From positions 248,001 to 312,000 of the forward strand of contig CM061250.1 of NCBI GenBank assembly GCA_022605425.2: 64,000 bases of DNA, in the 5' to 3' direction. Source of the DNA: Hamiltosporidium tvaerminnensis FI-OER-3-3. Taxonomy: Eukaryota; Fungi; Microsporidia. A program made the translations under genes and the position numbers. The notes beneath the pieces were generated by a model. The model did not search any database, was not told the origin of the DNA, and was given only the letters and a program-made list of their open reading frames with translations. Below, piece by piece: positions 13,961-30,409 of the stretch; positions within the stretch are counted from its first letter, which is position 1; every line of letters starts with the position of its first letter.

Positions 13961-14299
13961 CCCTTGGTGTGGATGTAGGGGAGATAGAAAGATAGGAATC
14001 CTTGGTGTGGATGTAGGTGGGATAGAAAGATAGGAATCCTTGGTGTGGATGTAGGTGAGATAGAAAGATAGGAATCCTTGGTGTGGATGTAGGTGGGATA
14101 GAAAGATAGGAACCCTTGGTGTGGATGTAGGGGAGATAGGAATCCTTGGTGTGGATGTAGGTGAGATAGAAAGATAGGAATCCTTGGTGTGGATGTAGGT
14201 GAGATAGAAAGATAGGAACCCTTGGTGTGGATGTAGGTAGGATAGAAAGATAGGAATCCTTGGTGTGGATGTAAGTGGGATAGAAAGATAGGATCCCTT
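13961..14299 (+). repeat. 38-bp G-rich minisatellite, 9 units (one with an 8-bp deletion)
   Basis: Unit ccttggtgtggatgtaggtgRgatagaaagataggaat starts at 13962, 14000, 14038, 14076, 14114, 14144, 14182, 14220 and 14258. Confidence 0.97.
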
Positions 14300-24204: not shown

Positions 24205-27200
24205 ATAACTTAACACCCTATAAATCACCATTCTTCAATCCTACTTAAAACCTCTTCACTTCTCTTAATACCCCTCTCAACCTCAAAAATTATCCCTTTA
24301 ATTAAATTAAACTCTTTTTCCATTTTTAAAACCCCCATCACTTCAATTAAATCTTTCCATTCATTTTTCCATTTAATTATCCCTTTAACACACTCATCTA
24401 CTCTCTTTTTAACACCCCCAATACCTCTCTTTCTTCCTCCTTCACTCACACCACTAAAACTACTTATAGACACATCATCTACACCAATTCCCATTTCTAT
24501 ACCTTTTTGTATTCTTTCAAATAACCTGTCCACCTTTTCTACCACTTTATTCACACTAATTCTTATTTTTTCTATTTCTTCTACACTCTTACTAAAATAT
24601 CCTTTTAATTCAACAACAAACCTTTCCATAGAAATACCATTAACACCCTGTTGTATAGTATTATTGTTATTAAAGGGGTGTTGTATAGTATTATTGTTAT
24701 TAAAGGGGTGTTGTATAGTATTATTGTTATTAAAGGGGTGTTGTTCATTACTATCTATATTAACACCCCTATTATTACTACTATCATCATTAACACCCTG
24801 TTGTATAGTATTATTGTTATTAACACCCCTATAATTACTACTATCAATATTAACACCCTGTTGTATACTATTATTGTTATTAACACCCTGTTGTTCATTA
24901 GTACTAATATTAACACCATATTGTTTATCAGATGGCTTATTAACACCCTGTTGTTCATTAGTATATATATTAACACCCCTATAGTTACTACTATCTATAT
25001 TATCACCCCTATAGTTACTACTATCTATATTAACACCCCCTACCTCCCTACAACCCTTTATAATATAATAACTCTCCATAAATTTACCAGCCTTATTAAA
25101 ATAATAAACACATTCTTCTTTATCATTGAAATACCTTTTCATAATATAACCAACACCTTCATATTTCTTGTTATTTAAAAGGTATGAAATTAAAAGACAT
25201 AAAAAATTATTTAAAGGTAAATTTATAAGACTGGAATATGTTTGTATATCTTCATTAGAATAACACACCTTTACAAAAGTAAAAGGTAAGTCAATACTAT
25301 TATTAATATTGGTTATATTACTACTATTAGTATTATTACTAATATTGTTTATATTAGTAATCTTTTTATTATTAATATTATTACTATTCTCACCTTTACT
25401 ATTACTATTCTCACCTTTACTATTATTATTCTCACTTTTATTGTTACTATTCTCACCTTTATTATTCTCTTCACTATTCCTCCTTTTTCTTAGTACCTTG
25501 TAGTGTCTAATACACTCTTCCCAGTAAAACAACTCAAAAGATAAAATAAAAGTTTTTTTTAAATTTTTAATTTTAAAATAAATTTTATAAGAGTCTTCTT
25601 TAGATAGGGTGTTAGCATATAAATTATAGAAATAACCAGGTTCTCTATTTATAAAGGGTGGGGTGTTATTACAGGGGGAAATGTAAAATGAATGGTTAAA
25701 GTATTTTTTTAAACAAAGAGGGAATAAAGGGTTATAAATGTATGGAGTGTTATTAGGGGGGTGTTGTATAGTATTGATATTAAGAGGGTGTTGTTCATTA
25801 GTACTGTTATTAAGAGGGTGTTGTTCATTGGTATTGTTGTTAAGAGGGTGTTGTTCATTAGTACTGTTATTAAGAGGGTGTTGTTCATTGGTATTGTTGT
25901 TAAGAGGGTGTTGTTCATTAGTACTGTTATTAAGAGGGTGTTGTTCATTGGTATTGTTGTTAAGAGGGTGTTGTTCATTGGTATTGTTGTTAAGAGGGTG
26001 TTGTTCATTGGTACTCTTATTAAGGGGGTGTTGTTCATTGGTACTGTTATTAAGAGGGTGTTGTTTATACGGAGTGTTGTTAGTAACACCCTGTTGATCA
26101 TGGGCACAGTTACTAGTGTTATTAACACCCTGTTGTTTATTAATACTGTTGTTAACACCCTTTATATCATACTCCTTATCATTAACACCCTTACAATCAC
26201 CTATATCATTAAAACCCTTACAATCACCTATATCATTATCACCTGTTAAATCACCTACTTCATTATACAGACTATCATATTTTAAAGATGAAATGTATAA
26301 ATTATTTCTTTTAATATATTCTTGTTCTTTAATTTTATCATTTATAAGTAATAAATAATACAAAGAAATTTCTTTTCTACCGAGATAATCATTAATAAGG
26401 AATTTTTCATATGAAGAACAATAAGTATCATTAGTAGTGTTACTAGAGGGGTGTTGTTCATTAGTAGTCTTATTAAAGGGGGGTTGTTCATGAGTAGTAT
26501 TGTTAACACCCTGCTGTATATTAGATAGATTGTTAACACCCTGTTGTATATCAGATAGATTGTTAACACCCTGTTGTTTATTAGTACTGTTACTAACACC
26601 CTGCTGTATATTAGATACATGGTTAACACCCTGTTGTATATTAGATACATGGTTAACACCCTGTTGTATATCAGATAGATTGTTAACACCCTGTTGTTCA
26701 TTAGTAGTATTGTTAACACCCTCTACCACACTACTATTATAATTAACCTCCTTTACCACACTACTAATATTATTAACACCCTCTACCATATCTCTGTTAC
26801 CCTTTAACACTTCATTATATATTAAAGGATCTTCATTACAATACTCTGCCAATTCTATCACAAGTCTCTTATTATAACACCCCATACCTTCTCTAAAGAT
26901 ATCATGGTATGATAAATAAGAAGAAAGAATTTTAACACAATTTTTTAGTTTTTTTAATTTGTAAGAAAAAATAAGTGCTGTGTCTACTTTTCCTATAAAA
27001 TGTAAAATAACAATTATTGAGTTAAAATCTTCTATTTTGTTTAAATTTAAAAGGAATTTAAAGATAAATAAGTTTATATCAGTAAAGGGTGTTATATATA
27101 AGGATGTGTAATAAGGGGTATTAAGAGGGTGTTGTGTAATAGGACTCGTATTAAGAGGGTGATAATTATTAGATAGATTGTTAAAGGGGTGTTGTTCATC

Positions 27201-28020
27201 AGAGATAGTGTTTACACCCTTTATATTACTACTGTTACTAAAACCCCTTAATTTCATATCCATATCCTCTCCTTCATTAACACCCTTTATATCACTACCC
27301 TTGTCATTAACACCCTTTATATCAACACCCTTATCATTAACACCCCCACACCTGTTATTCATAGAACTATAATCTGTGTAAATAACACCTAAAAGACAAT
27401 CATTACATAAAGGGGTGTTATTCTTCTTATCAAGCATATTATAAATTTCCAAGAAAATATCAGTAATAAGACTGTTAACCATAAGACTATCCTTATCACT
27501 AGTATAACAACACTTAGAATTAACTATTCGACATGAAAATAATAATTCTTTAATATTAATATTATTATTAAATAACACACTATAATTTAAAGAATATGTA
27601 TTTATAAGTGTAATAGCTGCTTCATATTTATTCTTTAAAATATAATTTTTAATTTTTTCTGTTACTAAAGTCTTGGGTGTTAATGATTCTATACTTCCAC
27701 GTATTATATAGGAAATAAGAGTGGTGTTATTTCTTATACAGAGGATGTATGGGGTGTTATCTGATGGAAGTGTTTCTATTAAGTTTAAAGGGTCTAATTT
27801 ATAGATACTGTAAGTATGTTTAGAGGATGTTATTAAGTAGGTGTTATTTGTAATAAAAGAAAGGGTGTTAGGTATAAGGGTAGTAGTAGGGGTGTTATCT
27901 GAAGGGAATGTGGTAGGGGTGTTAGATAAAAGGGTTGTAGTAGGGGTGTTAGATATTGAGTTAGTAGTAGGGGTGTTAATAATGGTACTACTAGTAGGGG
28001 TGTTAGTTATAGTATTGGCT
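24205..28020. repeat. Dispersed and tandem GGGTGTTA/TAACACCC motif arrays (mostly 30-bp units) within the 3' two-thirds of ELP1
   Basis: e.g. 25780-26060 (NEQHPLNN(S/N)T x~9), 26500-26720 (QQGVN x~7), 24640-25040, 27840-28010 (NTPTT). Confidence 0.95.
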
Positions 28021-30149
28021 TCTATGTTAATAATATGTAATTGGTTGTTAATTAATGCGAGTAAAACATTTTTATGCAAATAAATTTGAAAATGCATTGT
28101 TTTTATGCATGGAAGTATAAAAGAAATATTTTTATGCATAAACAGATGGTTGGTGGTGAGGAGAGACAATGAATTTTGAAAATTAAACATTTTAAGAATT
28201 GAAGAATTTTCTTTTTTTAAATATATTGTGTCATCTATAACTAATAGTTGGGAAAATGTGTTTGAAATGTTTTTTTTATCTGTGTTAGGTATCTTTTGAG
28301 TAATTATAGGATGTTTTAGTGCGGTAAAGGATTTTTGTGTGGAATTACAGTTACAATTTATTTTTTTATTTGAAATATTTATTATTTGACAAGAACAAGG
28401 ATCTGTATAAGGAATGGTTATAATAGAATCAATTGAAAGAGTATCGTTTTCTATTTTTATTGTTTCTATAAAATAAGAAATTTTAGGTGAAATAAGTGAA
28501 GAGGAATTGATTAAAACAGAATCTGATTTGGTTTCTGAATCTTTAGAATATATTGTAGAGATTTGATCGTTGGAATTTATTGTAGAGACGGAAGAAATTG
28601 AATCCGATTTGGTTTCTGAATCTTTAGAATTTATTATAGAGATTTGATCGTTGGAATTTATTGTAGAGACGGAAGAAATTGAATCCGATTTGGTTTTTGA
28701 ATCCACTTCATATTTAGTTTTAGAATCTTCAGAATATATTGCAGCGACAGAAGGAATAGATAGAGGATTGTTTGAATCCACTTCATATTTAGTTTTAGAA
28801 TCTTCAGAATATATTGCAGCGACAGAAGGAATAGATAGAGGATTGTTTGAATCCACTTCACATTTAGTTTTAGCATCTTCAGAATTTATTGCAGCGACAA
28901 AAGGAATAGATAGAGAATTGTTTGAATCTAATTCATATTTAGTGTTTGAATCTTCTGAGTTTATTGTAGAAGTCAAAACAAATATTTTGTGATTTGAAAA
29001 ACAAATGTCTATAACGTTATAAGAAAGAGAAATGCTACTTGAAGAAAACGGTGGTGGAATAATTTTGTTCTGATAATTGTAAAAATATATATTTTTACCA
29101 TTTATGACACCAAATTGTGTGTCTTGAGAAGTAATTTCTTTGTAAAAATAATATTTTATAATTTTATTTTCACTTTTTAAAAAAATAATATTTTTATGAA
29201 TTGAAAGAAATTTTTGTGTTTTGGGAACAAATTTATGAATTTTAAGGTACCATTTAAAATTTGATAAGAAAAATATTTTAAATTCGTTAAATTCTTTAAG
29301 ATGGTTGAATACTAAAAGTAAATTGGAATCGATATAAGAAATGTGTGTGTTGTGTGTTTTTAGAGGAGAATGATGTAGAAGCCCGTTTGGTTCTATAAAA
29401 TATATAATTTCTGGTGAAGAAAGAGCAAATGTATTATATTTTGAATTCCAAGAAATTGAACCGGTGGGTTTGAAATTTAAAGATACGGAAATATTTTCTA
29501 ATTCTGTGTTATATATTAATATTTGAGTGTTAAAAATTATTGCGAATTTATTTTGATCGGACCATTCTAAGTTTATAAAAGTTTCTTCGGTAGTAAATAT
29601 ATGATTTGTATCAATATATTTATTTGGAAGTATAGTATCTGACAAAATATGTGTATTTTTTAAAATTTCAAAATTCTCATTCAAAAGATATATTTCCTTG
29701 TTCTGAAGAAGAATTACACAATATTTTTGTGATGGACTGAATCTACAAAGAATAATTTTATGTTCAAAAGTTCCTATTTCTGTGATTTTGTTGAGTTTTT
29801 TATGAATAAGAAATATTGAGTTTGTATTAGAAATAAGAAAGTAAAAATATTTTGAATTGAAAAAATATTCAATTTTTAAAGATGAATTAAGTTCAGTATT
29901 TGGCATGTTTTCTTCGTAGGATTTTTTTGATTTTATTATTTCTGAAATTTTAGAATTCTCGTTTTTGATTTCTTTTTGTGAATTATTTGAATGAATAATT
30001 GTTGATTTGAACGTTTCCAAGTCACATAATATTTCTAAGTCTGATATAGAAAGTATTTTATTGTCAATAAGTATAGATTTATTAGAATATAAAAAATCTT
30101 TTGATTTTAATTCTACTATTTTAGAATTTCTTATAAAAAAATTTTCCAT
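24225..30149 (-). CDS. ELP1: Elongator subunit Elp1 (Iki3/IKAP), expanded by multiple in-frame repeat arrays
   Basis: Elp1 motifs IEPNGLLH, NFKWYLK, IIPPPF, RGSIESLTPKTLV, EDPLIY, KFLINDYLG; likely start is the ATG at 30149, which follows CCCCAAAAAA (the ORF-track start at 30170 is TTG). Confidence 0.85.
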   Translation of the reverse strand: MENFFIRNSKIVELKSKDFLYSNKSILIDNKILSISDLEILCDLETFKSTIIHSNNSQKEIKNENSKISEIIKSKKSYEENMPNTELNSSLKIEYFFNSKYFYFLISNTNSIFLIHKKLNKITEIGTFEHKIILCRFSPSQKYCVILLQNKEIYLLNENFEILKNTHILSDTILPNKYIDTNHIFTTEETFINLEWSDQNKFAIIFNTQILIYNTELENISVSLNFKPTGSISWNSKYNTFALSSPEIIYFIEPNGLLHHSPLKTHNTHISYIDSNLLLVFNHLKEFNEFKIFFLSNFKWYLKIHKFVPKTQKFLSIHKNIIFLKSENKIIKYYFYKEITSQDTQFGVINGKNIYFYNYQNKIIPPPFSSSSISLSYNVIDICFSNHKIFVLTSTINSEDSNTKYELDSNNSLSIPFVAAINSEDAKTKCEVDSNNPLSIPSVAAIYSEDSKTKYEVDSNNPLSIPSVAAIYSEDSKTKYEVDSKTKSDSISSVSTINSNDQISIINSKDSETKSDSISSVSTINSNDQISTIYSKDSETKSDSVLINSSSLISPKISYFIETIKIENDTLSIDSIITIPYTDPCSCQIINISNKKINCNCNSTQKSFTALKHPIITQKIPNTDKKNISNTFSQLLVIDDTIYLKKENSSILKMFNFQNSLSLLTTNHLFMHKNISFILPCIKTMHFQIYLHKNVLLALINNQLHIINIEANTITNTPTSSTIINTPTTNSISNTPTTTLLSNTPTTFPSDNTPTTTLIPNTLSFITNNTYLITSSKHTYSIYKLDPLNLIETLPSDNTPYILCIRNNTTLISYIIRGSIESLTPKTLVTEKIKNYILKNKYEAAITLINTYSLNYSVLFNNNINIKELLFSCRIVNSKCCYTSDKDSLMVNSLITDIFLEIYNMLDKKNNTPLCNDCLLGVIYTDYSSMNNRCGGVNDKGVDIKGVNDKGSDIKGVNEGEDMDMKLRGFSNSSNIKGVNTISDEQHPFNNLSNNYHPLNTSPITQHPLNTPYYTSLYITPFTDINLFIFKFLLNLNKIEDFNSIIVILHFIGKVDTALIFSYKLKKLKNCVKILSSYLSYHDIFREGMGCYNKRLVIELAEYCNEDPLIYNEVLKGNRDMVEGVNNISSVVKEVNYNSSVVEGVNNTTNEQQGVNNLSDIQQGVNHVSNIQQGVNHVSNIQQGVSNSTNKQQGVNNLSDIQQGVNNLSNIQQGVNNTTHEQPPFNKTTNEQHPSSNTTNDTYCSSYEKFLINDYLGRKEISLYYLLLINDKIKEQEYIKRNNLYISSLKYDSLYNEVGDLTGDNDIGDCKGFNDIGDCKGVNDKEYDIKGVNNSINKQQGVNNTSNCAHDQQGVTNNTPYKQHPLNNSTNEQHPLNKSTNEQHPLNNNTNEQHPLNNNTNEQHPLNNSTNEQHPLNNNTNEQHPLNNSTNEQHPLNNNTNEQHPLNNSTNEQHPLNINTIQHPPNNTPYIYNPLFPLCLKKYFNHSFYISPCNNTPPFINREPGYFYNLYANTLSKEDSYKIYFKIKNLKKTFILSFELFYWEECIRHYKVLRKRRNSEENNKGENSNNKSENNNSKGENSNSKGENSNNINNKKITNINNISNNTNSSNITNINNSIDLPFTFVKVCYSNEDIQTYSSLINLPLNNFLCLLISYLLNNKKYEGVGYIMKRYFNDKEECVYYFNKAGKFMESYYIIKGCREVGGVNIDSSNYRGDNIDSSNYRGVNIYTNEQQGVNKPSDKQYGVNISTNEQQGVNNNNSIQQGVNIDSSNYRGVNNNNTIQQGVNDDSSNNRGVNIDSNEQHPFNNNNTIQHPFNNNNTIQHPFNNNNTIQQGVNGISMERFVVELKGYFSKSVEEIEKIRISVNKVVEKVDRLFERIQKGIEMGIGVDDVSISSFSGVSEGGRKRGIGGVKKRVDECVKGIIKWKNEWKDLIEVMGVLKMEKEFNLIKGIIFEVERGIKRSEEVLSRIEEW
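28515..28975 (-). repeat. In-frame ~75-81-bp tandem repeats in the Elp1 beta-propeller region
   Basis: SED(S/A)KTK(Y/C)EVDSNNPLSIPSVAAI x~3.5 and SDSISSVSTINSNDQIS..SKDSETK x2; these lack the GGGTGTTA motif. Confidence 0.9.
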
Positions 30150-30159
30150 TTTTTTGGGG
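30150..30159 (-). promoter_or_regulatory. Microsporidian CCC-like start-proximal motif (example at ELP1; also at LUC7, PRE1, NSE3, SEC15 and BPL)
   Basis: ccccaaaaaaATG (ELP1), acccatatATG (LUC7), acccATG (PRE1), ccctaaaaaaATG (NSE3), cccatATG (SEC15), ccctttcattaaaatataaATG (BPL). Confidence 0.75.
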
Positions 30160-30409
30160 CTAAAGATCAAACAAAATCTAAAAACGAATTCTTTCTTGGT
30201 TGTTTAGATTAACATGAAATTTTATAAGATTTTTTTAAATTATAATAATCGTTTTATTAATAATATTACATTTGAATATAAGAAAGGAACATAATATAGA
30301 CATATGTAATTGTGTGAGAAACATACTAAAAACTATTTTTTGTTGGAATCATTTAAGTCGAATTCGTTTGGAAAATTATTGTTATAATTAATAGAATGAA
30401 AAATTCATT

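Follow-up and report, generated by a model that had tools for sequence, protein, structure and literature searches.

The closest described systems to the repeats treated here are inserts found in the same organism. Insertions of 15-57 residues that keep the reading frame were reported in 14 proteins of Octosporea bayeri, that is Hamiltosporidium tvaerminnensis, and the inserts of these 14 were shown by reverse transcription polymerase chain reaction (RT-PCR) to be retained in the mRNA; ELP1 is not among the proteins listed in the accessible part of that report (Corradi et al., 2009; PMC2784321). For Hamiltosporidium more broadly, the available text of a second study describes asparagine-rich in-frame expansions of MCM, for which inteins were considered (Haag et al., 2020; PMC6944219). 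Here we describe a stretch of 64,000 nucleotides of the H. tvaerminnensis FI-OER-3-3 genome (GenBank assembly GCA_022605425.2, contig CM061250.1, positions 248,001 to 312,000; hereafter the window, in which all positions are counted from its first letter). Its ELP1 gene (also IKI3) carries five in-frame arrays and scattered single copies of a Hamiltosporidium-wide minisatellite family. The repeat unit, 27 or 30 bp long, combines an AT-rich spacer with a GC-rich core of 8 bp that does not vary (GGGTGTTA or its complement). The family is a real, genus-wide DNA repeat that writes protein sequence, and it is largely undescribed.

The two earlier reports deal with this phenomenon in the same organism as it appears in proteins, namely as in-frame sequence lying between conserved motifs. 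In the parts of both that were accessible, there is no mention of a shared DNA core, of tandem units, of their orientation or polarity, of non-coding copies or of genome-wide numbers, and neither lists ELP1. The peptide motifs GVN and QHP, into which the core is most often translated in ELP1, do not occur in the accessible supplement text of the first report, which itself contains no insert sequences (PMC2784321). Full-text literature searches on in-frame or low-complexity inserts of Hamiltosporidium and on microsporidian minisatellites yielded no description of a shared core.

Core-bearing arrays in the ELP1 gene

The window has a G+C content of 26% and holds 42 copies of GGGTGTTA, 40 of which lie within 24211-28005, whereas shuffles that preserve the dinucleotide composition averaged 0.85 copies per window and never exceeded 3. 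The 7-mer GGGTGTT/AACACCC is distributed in the same way, with 58 copies (29 + 29) in 24205-28020 and 5 in the rest of the window, which bears out the claim of a first-pass annotation, made from the sequence alone, that a motif is concentrated in about 3.8 kb of ELP1. Tandem Repeats Finder resolves this segment into arrays of period 27 or 30, each with 2-11 copies arranged head to tail (Table 1). Translation of the coding strand uses the core in three registers: xxG GGT GTT encodes GV with N or S after it (27 copies), CAA CAC CCT encodes QHP (17 copies) and AAC ACC CCT encodes NTP (10 copies), so that the earlier proposal of three peptide readings from one core present on both strands holds. 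The G strand of the Array 0 unit, which gives the NTP reading, contains stop codons in two of its three frames according to our own reading of the Tandem Repeats Finder consensus, and judged by eye this unit resembles the non-coding arrays described below.

Table 1. Positions in the window of the ELP1 gene, its arrays and its single core copies.
Feature	Position	Strand	Tandem Repeats Finder interval	Description
ELP1/IKI3 open reading frame	24225-30170	minus		1981 codons without a stop; first ATG is codon 8; all arrays in frame
Array 0	27863-28006	minus	27863-28006	27-bp units, 5.3 copies; NTPTT-type reading; G-rich core on the plus strand, antisense to the gene
Array I	27087-27345	minus	27274-27345	KGVN/GGVN units (27278-27345), then QHPF/YHPL/QHPL units (27087-27200)
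Array II	26428-26788	minus	26428-26788	EGVN units, then eight 30-bp QQGVN units, then two QHP-type units
Array III	25748-26265	minus	25748-26265	KGFN/KGVN/QQGVN units (26084-26265), then 10.7 30-bp NEQHPLN-type units (25748-26065)
Array IV	24638-25038	minus	24638-25038	RGVN/QQGVN units, three QHPFN units, one last QQGVN unit
Single core copy, 3' flank	24211-24218	minus		7 nt past the TGA stop
Single antisense cores (three)	27752-27759, 27675-27682, 27413-27420	minus		DNTPY, SLTPK and NNTPL readings
Single antisense cores (two)	within 25607-25668	minus		ANTLS and NNTPP readings
Core-less in-frame tandem repeats of 81 and 75 bp	28519-28966	minus		N-terminal part of ELP1; 93-96% matches

Single copies accompany the arrays, among them one just past the ELP1 stop codon that the first-pass annotation had already noticed. 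Three further copies, which it had placed at 27758, 27681 and 27419 in conserved Elp1 segments, are indeed present and are retained in both Hamiltosporidium species, the conservation of these segments being seen within the genus only. The 5' third of the gene is free of the core, also as stated earlier, though it holds the 81-bp and 75-bp repeats of Table 1; since these lack the core, more than one repeat family lengthens the ELP1 protein.

The gene was assigned to ELP1 through residues 1-400, which reach the two N-terminal beta-propeller models of ELP1 in Pfam at or above their cut-offs (PF04762, 34.7 bits, cut-off 26.8; PF23797, 27.8 bits, cut-off 27.8). The closest database proteins are the H. 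tvaerminnensis and H. magnivora orthologues, which NCBI names IKI3. Pfam searches with the pieces between the arrays in the C-terminal half gave no match, also for the helical (TPR-like) dimerisation region, a phmmer search of PDB gave no match, Pfam and PDB searches with the whole protein returned no ELP1 match and just a spurious one to Extensin, and protein searches retrieved no homologue from outside Hamiltosporidium. As there is no profile match in the C-terminal half and no ELP1 from outside the genus, membership in ELP1 rests on the N-terminal half. The open frame had been put at about 1970 codons, in good agreement with its actual extent. Yeast Elp1 has about 1350 residues, the figure used in the first-pass annotation, and compared with it the Hamiltosporidium protein is lengthened by an estimated 600 residues or so.

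That the arrays might be artefacts of assembly, a possibility raised at the outset, is ruled out by the presence of the same arrays in H. tvaerminnensis and H. magnivora proteins from independent assemblies and by twenty public runs from 7 studies, each of which contains at least 58% of the 31-mers sampled from the motif stretch. Introns, inteins or bypass elements would not be expected to leave the ELP1 frame open through all arrays, as is the case here, and RT-PCR retention is known for other inserts, so that this candidate was set aside as well.

A repeat family spread over the genome

The assembly comprises 21,638,905 bases in 17 contigs, of which contig 5 contains the window. In the whole genome GGGTGTTAA occurs 2,667 times against 90 times for the reversed control, and AACACCCY occurs 6,790 times against 429, which shows that the motif is not confined to one locus and supports the earlier suggestion that it is genome-wide. 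The copies are clustered, and in the first 1.5 Mb of contig 1 about 87 of 100 copies fall in long open reading frames (ORFs) according to our own tally among the copies listed. Several of the host ORFs on contig 1 look like a large helicase, a PRP8-like protein, an isoleucyl-tRNA synthetase-like protein, a PI4-kinase and a topoisomerase-like protein, identities that come from our reading of the translations and from source names rather than from profile matches. When the array-bearing half of ELP1 was used as a protein query, it gave 65 matches, all from two Hamiltosporidium species and belonging to many unrelated families, among them Sec7, VPS13, helicases, RNA polymerase, PI4K and Prp8. Besides ELP1, more than a hundred housekeeping genes contain the core, as does non-coding DNA.

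What connects these loci extends beyond the core. A stretch of 251 nt from Array II matched at least 40 scored loci out of 184 candidates with 72-85% identity over up to 240 nt, a stretch of 326 nt from Array III matched at least 40 scored loci out of 153 candidates with 71-86% identity over up to 320 nt, and the matches to both fall on nearly every contig. Since identities of 72-86% are kept over 220-320 nt, homology spans whole 30-bp units and not the core alone; three identical 27/30-mers are even common to different loci. Of 63 regions with homology to the ELP1 units, 51 (81%) fall in long ORFs in the sense direction, while the coding share of the genome amounts to about 23% by our own arithmetic from the published gene number and mean gene length (PMC10542269). 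About 0.3 Mb of the genome was examined at letter level, and as the loci were mostly picked by motif matches, the sample is biased and such proportions are rough.

From the core count we estimate several hundred separate arrays in total, which are spread over almost all contigs and lie for the most part within long genes. The single regional domain envisaged in the first-pass annotation is not compatible with this distribution. A centromere signal, likewise suggested there, does not fit either, as several hundred mostly coding arrays do not match the centromeres of 13-17 chromosomes.

Conservation of the repeat at the DNA level

Codon usage around the core was determined in 86 long ORFs from the examined loci, a sample biased towards array-bearing genes. 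In these, Gly-Val is written GGT GTT in 942 of 1080 instances (87%), and the base preceding GGT GTT is G in 824 of the 942 (87%) against a background of 11% G at third positions, although the codon that holds this G may encode K, E, Q, G or R. Because the G is kept while the amino acid of its codon varies, conservation ignores both codon boundaries and amino-acid identity. Similarly, His-Pro is written CAC CCY in 93% of instances (302 of 326), compared with about 30% CAC outside His-Pro pairs (by our own subtraction).

The same pattern is found outside genes. The distance between adjacent cores is 30 bp in 1,335 cases genome-wide, 27 bp in 346 and 28-29 bp in 256. Those 28/29-bp arrays that were examined lie outside ORFs, have stop codons in their units and are flanked by mutually unrelated sequences. 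In a gapped comparison of 19 non-coding arrays, core positions were 0.93-0.99 identical in the next unit and spacer positions 0.59-0.86, or 0.96 for the core and 0.74 for the spacers taken together; the core was the more conserved part in all 19 arrays, and its edges are sharp at positions 0 and 7. Conservation at synonymous sites, the occurrence of both orientations and the non-coding arrays with the same core mean that the conserved and propagated unit is DNA rather than peptide, as the first-pass annotation had argued.

The converse view is that the GVN and QHPLN repeats are selected as peptides and that their identity at the DNA level merely reflects recent descent and gene conversion. It would account for the finding that 90% of the G-cores in the 86 ORFs share one frame, for the large proportion of homologous regions in sense ORFs and for the conserved order of the units described below. 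It is nevertheless very improbable, as GGT GTT and CAC CCY are chosen against AT pressure and the conservation crosses codon boundaries, as one core gives rise to three unrelated peptide readings, as non-coding arrays with stops in all frames retain the core, and as the host proteins are functionally unrelated to each other. Genome-wide enrichment in one reading frame had been named beforehand as a sign of protein-level selection, and such an enrichment does exist in part; the bias is better explained by the tolerability of the encoded peptide, because the alternative open frames of the homologous regions encode hydrophobic peptides of the RVLI or INTLL type, as judged from their translations. 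Three arrays homologous to QQGVN units (L040:1506-2009, L045:3548-3929 and L044:1514-1707) are open only in the +1 frame, which translates into hydrophobic repeats of the NNRVLI type; a shift of frame in the copy, an error in the assembly or a non-coding nature of the copy may account for them.

A sharp-edged 8-bp core whose conservation extends to both orientations, to synonymous sites and to non-coding arrays, with a 28-30-bp spacing that is alike in coding and non-coding DNA, could also be expected of binding-site arrays for a sequence-specific protein of the Myb, Rap1, Reb1 or Tbf1 kind that binds double-stranded DNA and has a chromosomal role, for example at a replication-fork barrier, an origin or a chromatin mark. 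The footprint of such a protein would set the spacing, and fork stalling would lead to tandem duplications. The core itself recalls known sites, as ACACCC resembles the yeast Rap1 half-site and AAGGGT resembles Reb1 and telobox sites. We nonetheless hold binding arrays to be decidedly unlikely, since most copies lie within coding sequence, which is unusual for regulatory or origin sites, and since several hundred arrays follow no obvious positional logic; the Rap1 suggestion of the first-pass annotation thus found no support. A search of the genome for the Rap1 domains PF09197 and PF08914 gave no match, a result that is uninformative because control genomes likewise gave none.

Order of the units and the flipped core

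Composite arrays contain both GV-type and QHP/YHP-type units, and their order is strikingly uniform: in 40 out of 51 all GV-type units precede all QHP/YHP-type units, the reverse order was seen in none and the remaining 11 are mixed. The usual succession runs from xLEGV to xYKGV or xIKGV, then to KQQGV and finally to KQHP(L/F/V)N, and arrays I to IV of ELP1 follow this order from GV to QHP. Outside the core, the GV and HP consensus units of ELP1 agree at 33 of 36 positions when aligned directly and at 15 of 34 when one is reverse-complemented (hand count), by which the idea that QHP units are inverted copies of GV units was rejected for the coding arrays. The QHP unit thus reads as a QQGVN unit in the same orientation in which only the core is flipped, CAG GGT GTT standing against CAC CCT (G/C/T)TT, and at the sequence level the flip amounts to a change from GGG to CCC within the short palindrome AACA-GGG-TGTT. 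The exact product of this flip, QHPV, is common in other genes, and hybrid cores with a QHGV reading are also present. True inverted arms were found in one non-coding array (L030:3010-3570; G000 C4:421510-422070), in which seven G-strand units are followed by eight reverse-complement units, forming a palindrome of arrays with a foldback-like look.

Such a uniform order raises the possibility of a selfish mobile module, an ordered cassette running from EGV through KGV and QQGV to QHP that would be copied from gene to gene and then modified by local slippage. It could travel as a non-autonomous DNA element, foldback-like or resembling a miniature inverted-repeat transposable element, or through reverse-transcriptase-mediated copying of transcripts, and would then parallel, in a eukaryote, the Rickettsia palindromic elements (RPEs), which lie in frame within proteins. 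Besides the order of the units, the multi-unit homology that connects dozens of genes, the strong excess in sense-frame coding DNA and the foldback-like array with inverted arms are in keeping with it, as is the presence of the core in the 3' untranslated region (UTR) of a long interspersed nuclear element (LINE) of the APE-RT type, one copy of which (L001) has its core segment expanded from a single 3' UTR core to a non-coding array of about 17 units of 28-29 bp. This LINE array has the core alone in common with the gene arrays, however, and neither defined termini nor terminal inverted repeats or target-site duplications were found around 19 non-coding and 22 coding arrays. The flanks of the non-coding arrays are unrelated, for which reason the notion that the arrays are parts of one transposon was also rejected, the HP units of the coding arrays are direct rather than inverted, and the predicted RNA fold at the GV/QHP junction is no better than that of shuffles (z = -0.65). 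Nor was an empty site seen, as all ELP1 arrays are present in both species compared, which are very close. On balance a mobile module appears unlikely, if still to be reckoned with. A possible variant, which we put forward tentatively, is a eukaryotic selfish "coding minisatellite", a polar, ordered 27/30-bp cassette that would spread between genes almost only in sense and in frame, with the 8-bp core as the site on which the propagating machinery acts, be it a sequence-specific DNA-binding protein or nuclease or a route via reverse transcriptase and cDNA. If this were true, the lengthening of proteins in Hamiltosporidium would be active and element-driven instead of a product of passive slippage.

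The copies of the APE-RT LINE family (L001:1-2690, L008 on the reverse strand, L009 and L010) are about 66% identical to each other, carry one GGGGTGTTAAC in the 3' UTR and end in CCTAACCCT, which is like the C-strand of the telomere repeat. That a telomere-associated LINE carries the core, and that GGGTGTTA equals the G-strand unit GGGTTA plus two extra bases, could be taken in favour of a telomerase-like activity or some other addition from a fixed template at chromosome breaks, an origin that the first-pass annotation had proposed. The telomere repeat of H. tvaerminnensis is TTAGGG (PMC10542269), though, and the spacers are long, variable and locus-specific, unlike copies of one template, while the arrays lie inside genes and keep the frame. 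This origin has next to no probability.

Changes in unit number and the propagation of the arrays

The ELP1 protein deduced from the window can be compared with three independently assembled proteins, two from H. tvaerminnensis and one from H. magnivora. Their flanking sequences are almost identical, whereas arrays I-IV vary in unit number. Array III has 11 QHP units in the window and 5 in the protein of another isolate, and Array II has eight QQGVN units in the window and about one in another isolate's protein, differences to which the collapse of arrays in short-read assemblies may add. Within the H. tvaerminnensis genome, PI4K paralogues have arrays that differ by two repeat units and by a small number of substitutions. 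The PI4-kinase gene is part of an inverted segmental duplication with copies about 95 kb apart (L005 and L014; G000 C1:1265500-1270500 and 1171100-1174100). In the PRP8-like gene (L003:3100-5700; G000 C1:855100-857700) the coding sequence is split over three frames with shifts within the G-rich arrays, while the Illumina-based protein (P0063) continues through those arrays; the probable cause of these frame breaks is indels left in G runs of the long-read assembly, not the removal of arrays.

The traits of minisatellites are thus all present: units of 10-100 bp arranged head to tail, variation in unit number, and the same core at loci with differing units and flanks. We favour, with a confidence somewhat above even, a self-propagating family of core-anchored minisatellites that is filtered by reading frame and by the tolerability of the encoded peptide. 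Arrays would gain and lose units through slippage during replication or through unequal exchange, both in the register of the unit, and in DNA of 26% G+C the GC-rich core would be the only stable annealing anchor, so that units with an intact core would be copied preferentially. The same anchor could allow template switching or gene conversion to link the arrays of different genes and could permit the strand switch that flips the core. Selection would act purely as a filter, such that the survivors within genes keep the frame with units of 27 or 30 bp and encode hydrophilic loops rich in N, S, K, Q and G, and the outcome would be a non-adaptive lengthening of proteins. The role of selection as a frame filter, suggested in the first-pass annotation, is supported by the data.

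Several points weigh against this model of core-anchored minisatellites. The annealing anchor is inferred from sequence patterns. The comparison of core and spacers conditions on an intact core in the first unit, and once this is corrected, consensus frequencies are about 0.96 for the core and about 0.85 for the spacers; higher-order repeats further exaggerate the divergence of the spacers. The placement of 51 of the 63 homologous regions in sense ORFs, in a genome of such low coding share, is poorly explained by random spread followed by a filter and hints at spread from gene to gene or at a link to transcription or RNA. The fixed order from GV to QHP (40 arrays against 0) suggests an ordered module that is copied whole, which would be more like a mobile element than like slippage. 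The excess in coding sequence and the invariant order of the units keep the models of a mobile cassette and of a binding protein alive, and the bias of a locus sample picked from motif matches applies here as well.

Other repeats and core-bearing elements

A non-coding tandem repeat of 38 bp lies at 13962-14293 of the window, with 8.9 copies and higher-order periods of 106, 144 and 182 bp. It is rich in TG/GGTG and contains a AGATAGAAAGATAGG segment, and it is unrelated to the ELP1 units. Outside ELP1, GGGTGTTA occurs in the window only at 2429-2436 and 41113-41120, in two copies of a retroelement ORF where it is read as M-G-V-I-M; these look like chance occurrences and not like repeat units. 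The same retroelement protein is found in L006, L009 and L010 and has, by our own reading, a restriction-like endonuclease motif. On another contig, a region of about 5 kb (L019; G000 C3:629500-637500) holds four core-bearing arrays with periods of 30, 59/60, 38-40 and 40/64 bp, none of which is overlapped by an ORF of more than 100 amino acids; the region may derive from an array-rich gene that became a pseudogene long ago, or it may represent satellite DNA in a block.

Comparison with known repeat systems

Microsporidia are a textbook case of protein and genome shrinkage. This microsporidian with a large genome goes the opposite way, as one repeat family adds hundreds of residues to proteins that are essential, such as Elp1, Prp8, helicases, PI4K and RNA polymerase. 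Conservation at the level of DNA and not of codons implies that the propagation of a repeat writes protein sequence which selection merely tolerates, and this fits the non-adaptive view of the vertically transmitted Hamiltosporidium parasites (PMC6944219). On the practical side, the family explains why gene predictors invent introns in Hamiltosporidium and why long-read assemblies contain frameshifts within arrays, and strains could be typed with the arrays as hypervariable markers. Should the core be the target of a specific factor, this factor would provide a new handle on replication or recombination in microsporidia, where little is known about either.

Known systems resemble the family in part. 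Like the RPEs, selfish DNA lying in frame in protein genes (mentioned in PMC10969869 and PMC1779305), it is a repeated DNA element that is translated within unrelated proteins and also occurs in non-coding DNA. The Hamiltosporidium units differ from them in that they form tandem arrays and have no detectable palindromic fold or defined ends. RPEs, by comparison, are single palindromic elements of 100-150 bp in bacteria. The asparagine-rich low-complexity inserts of Plasmodium falciparum have been attributed to slippage and weak selection (PMC3749963; PMC5762703). The likeness here consists of an AT-rich parasite genome and of hydrophilic, low-complexity sequence inserted into conserved proteins. 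The inserts of Plasmodium consist mainly of simple codon runs, however, and they are not known to have a shared GC-rich core or a family of 27/30-bp units that are homologous between genes.

A further likeness is to the minisatellites of the type described by Jeffreys, which are dispersed tandem repeats with units of 10-60 bp that differ between loci, share a short G-rich core and vary in number, and whose core is thought to promote recombination or slippage. With these the Hamiltosporidium family has in common its many loci and a short G-rich core. In contrast to them, its arrays lie mostly in essential coding sequence, where they are kept in frame and add hundreds of residues, and its core is flipped within units of the same orientation.

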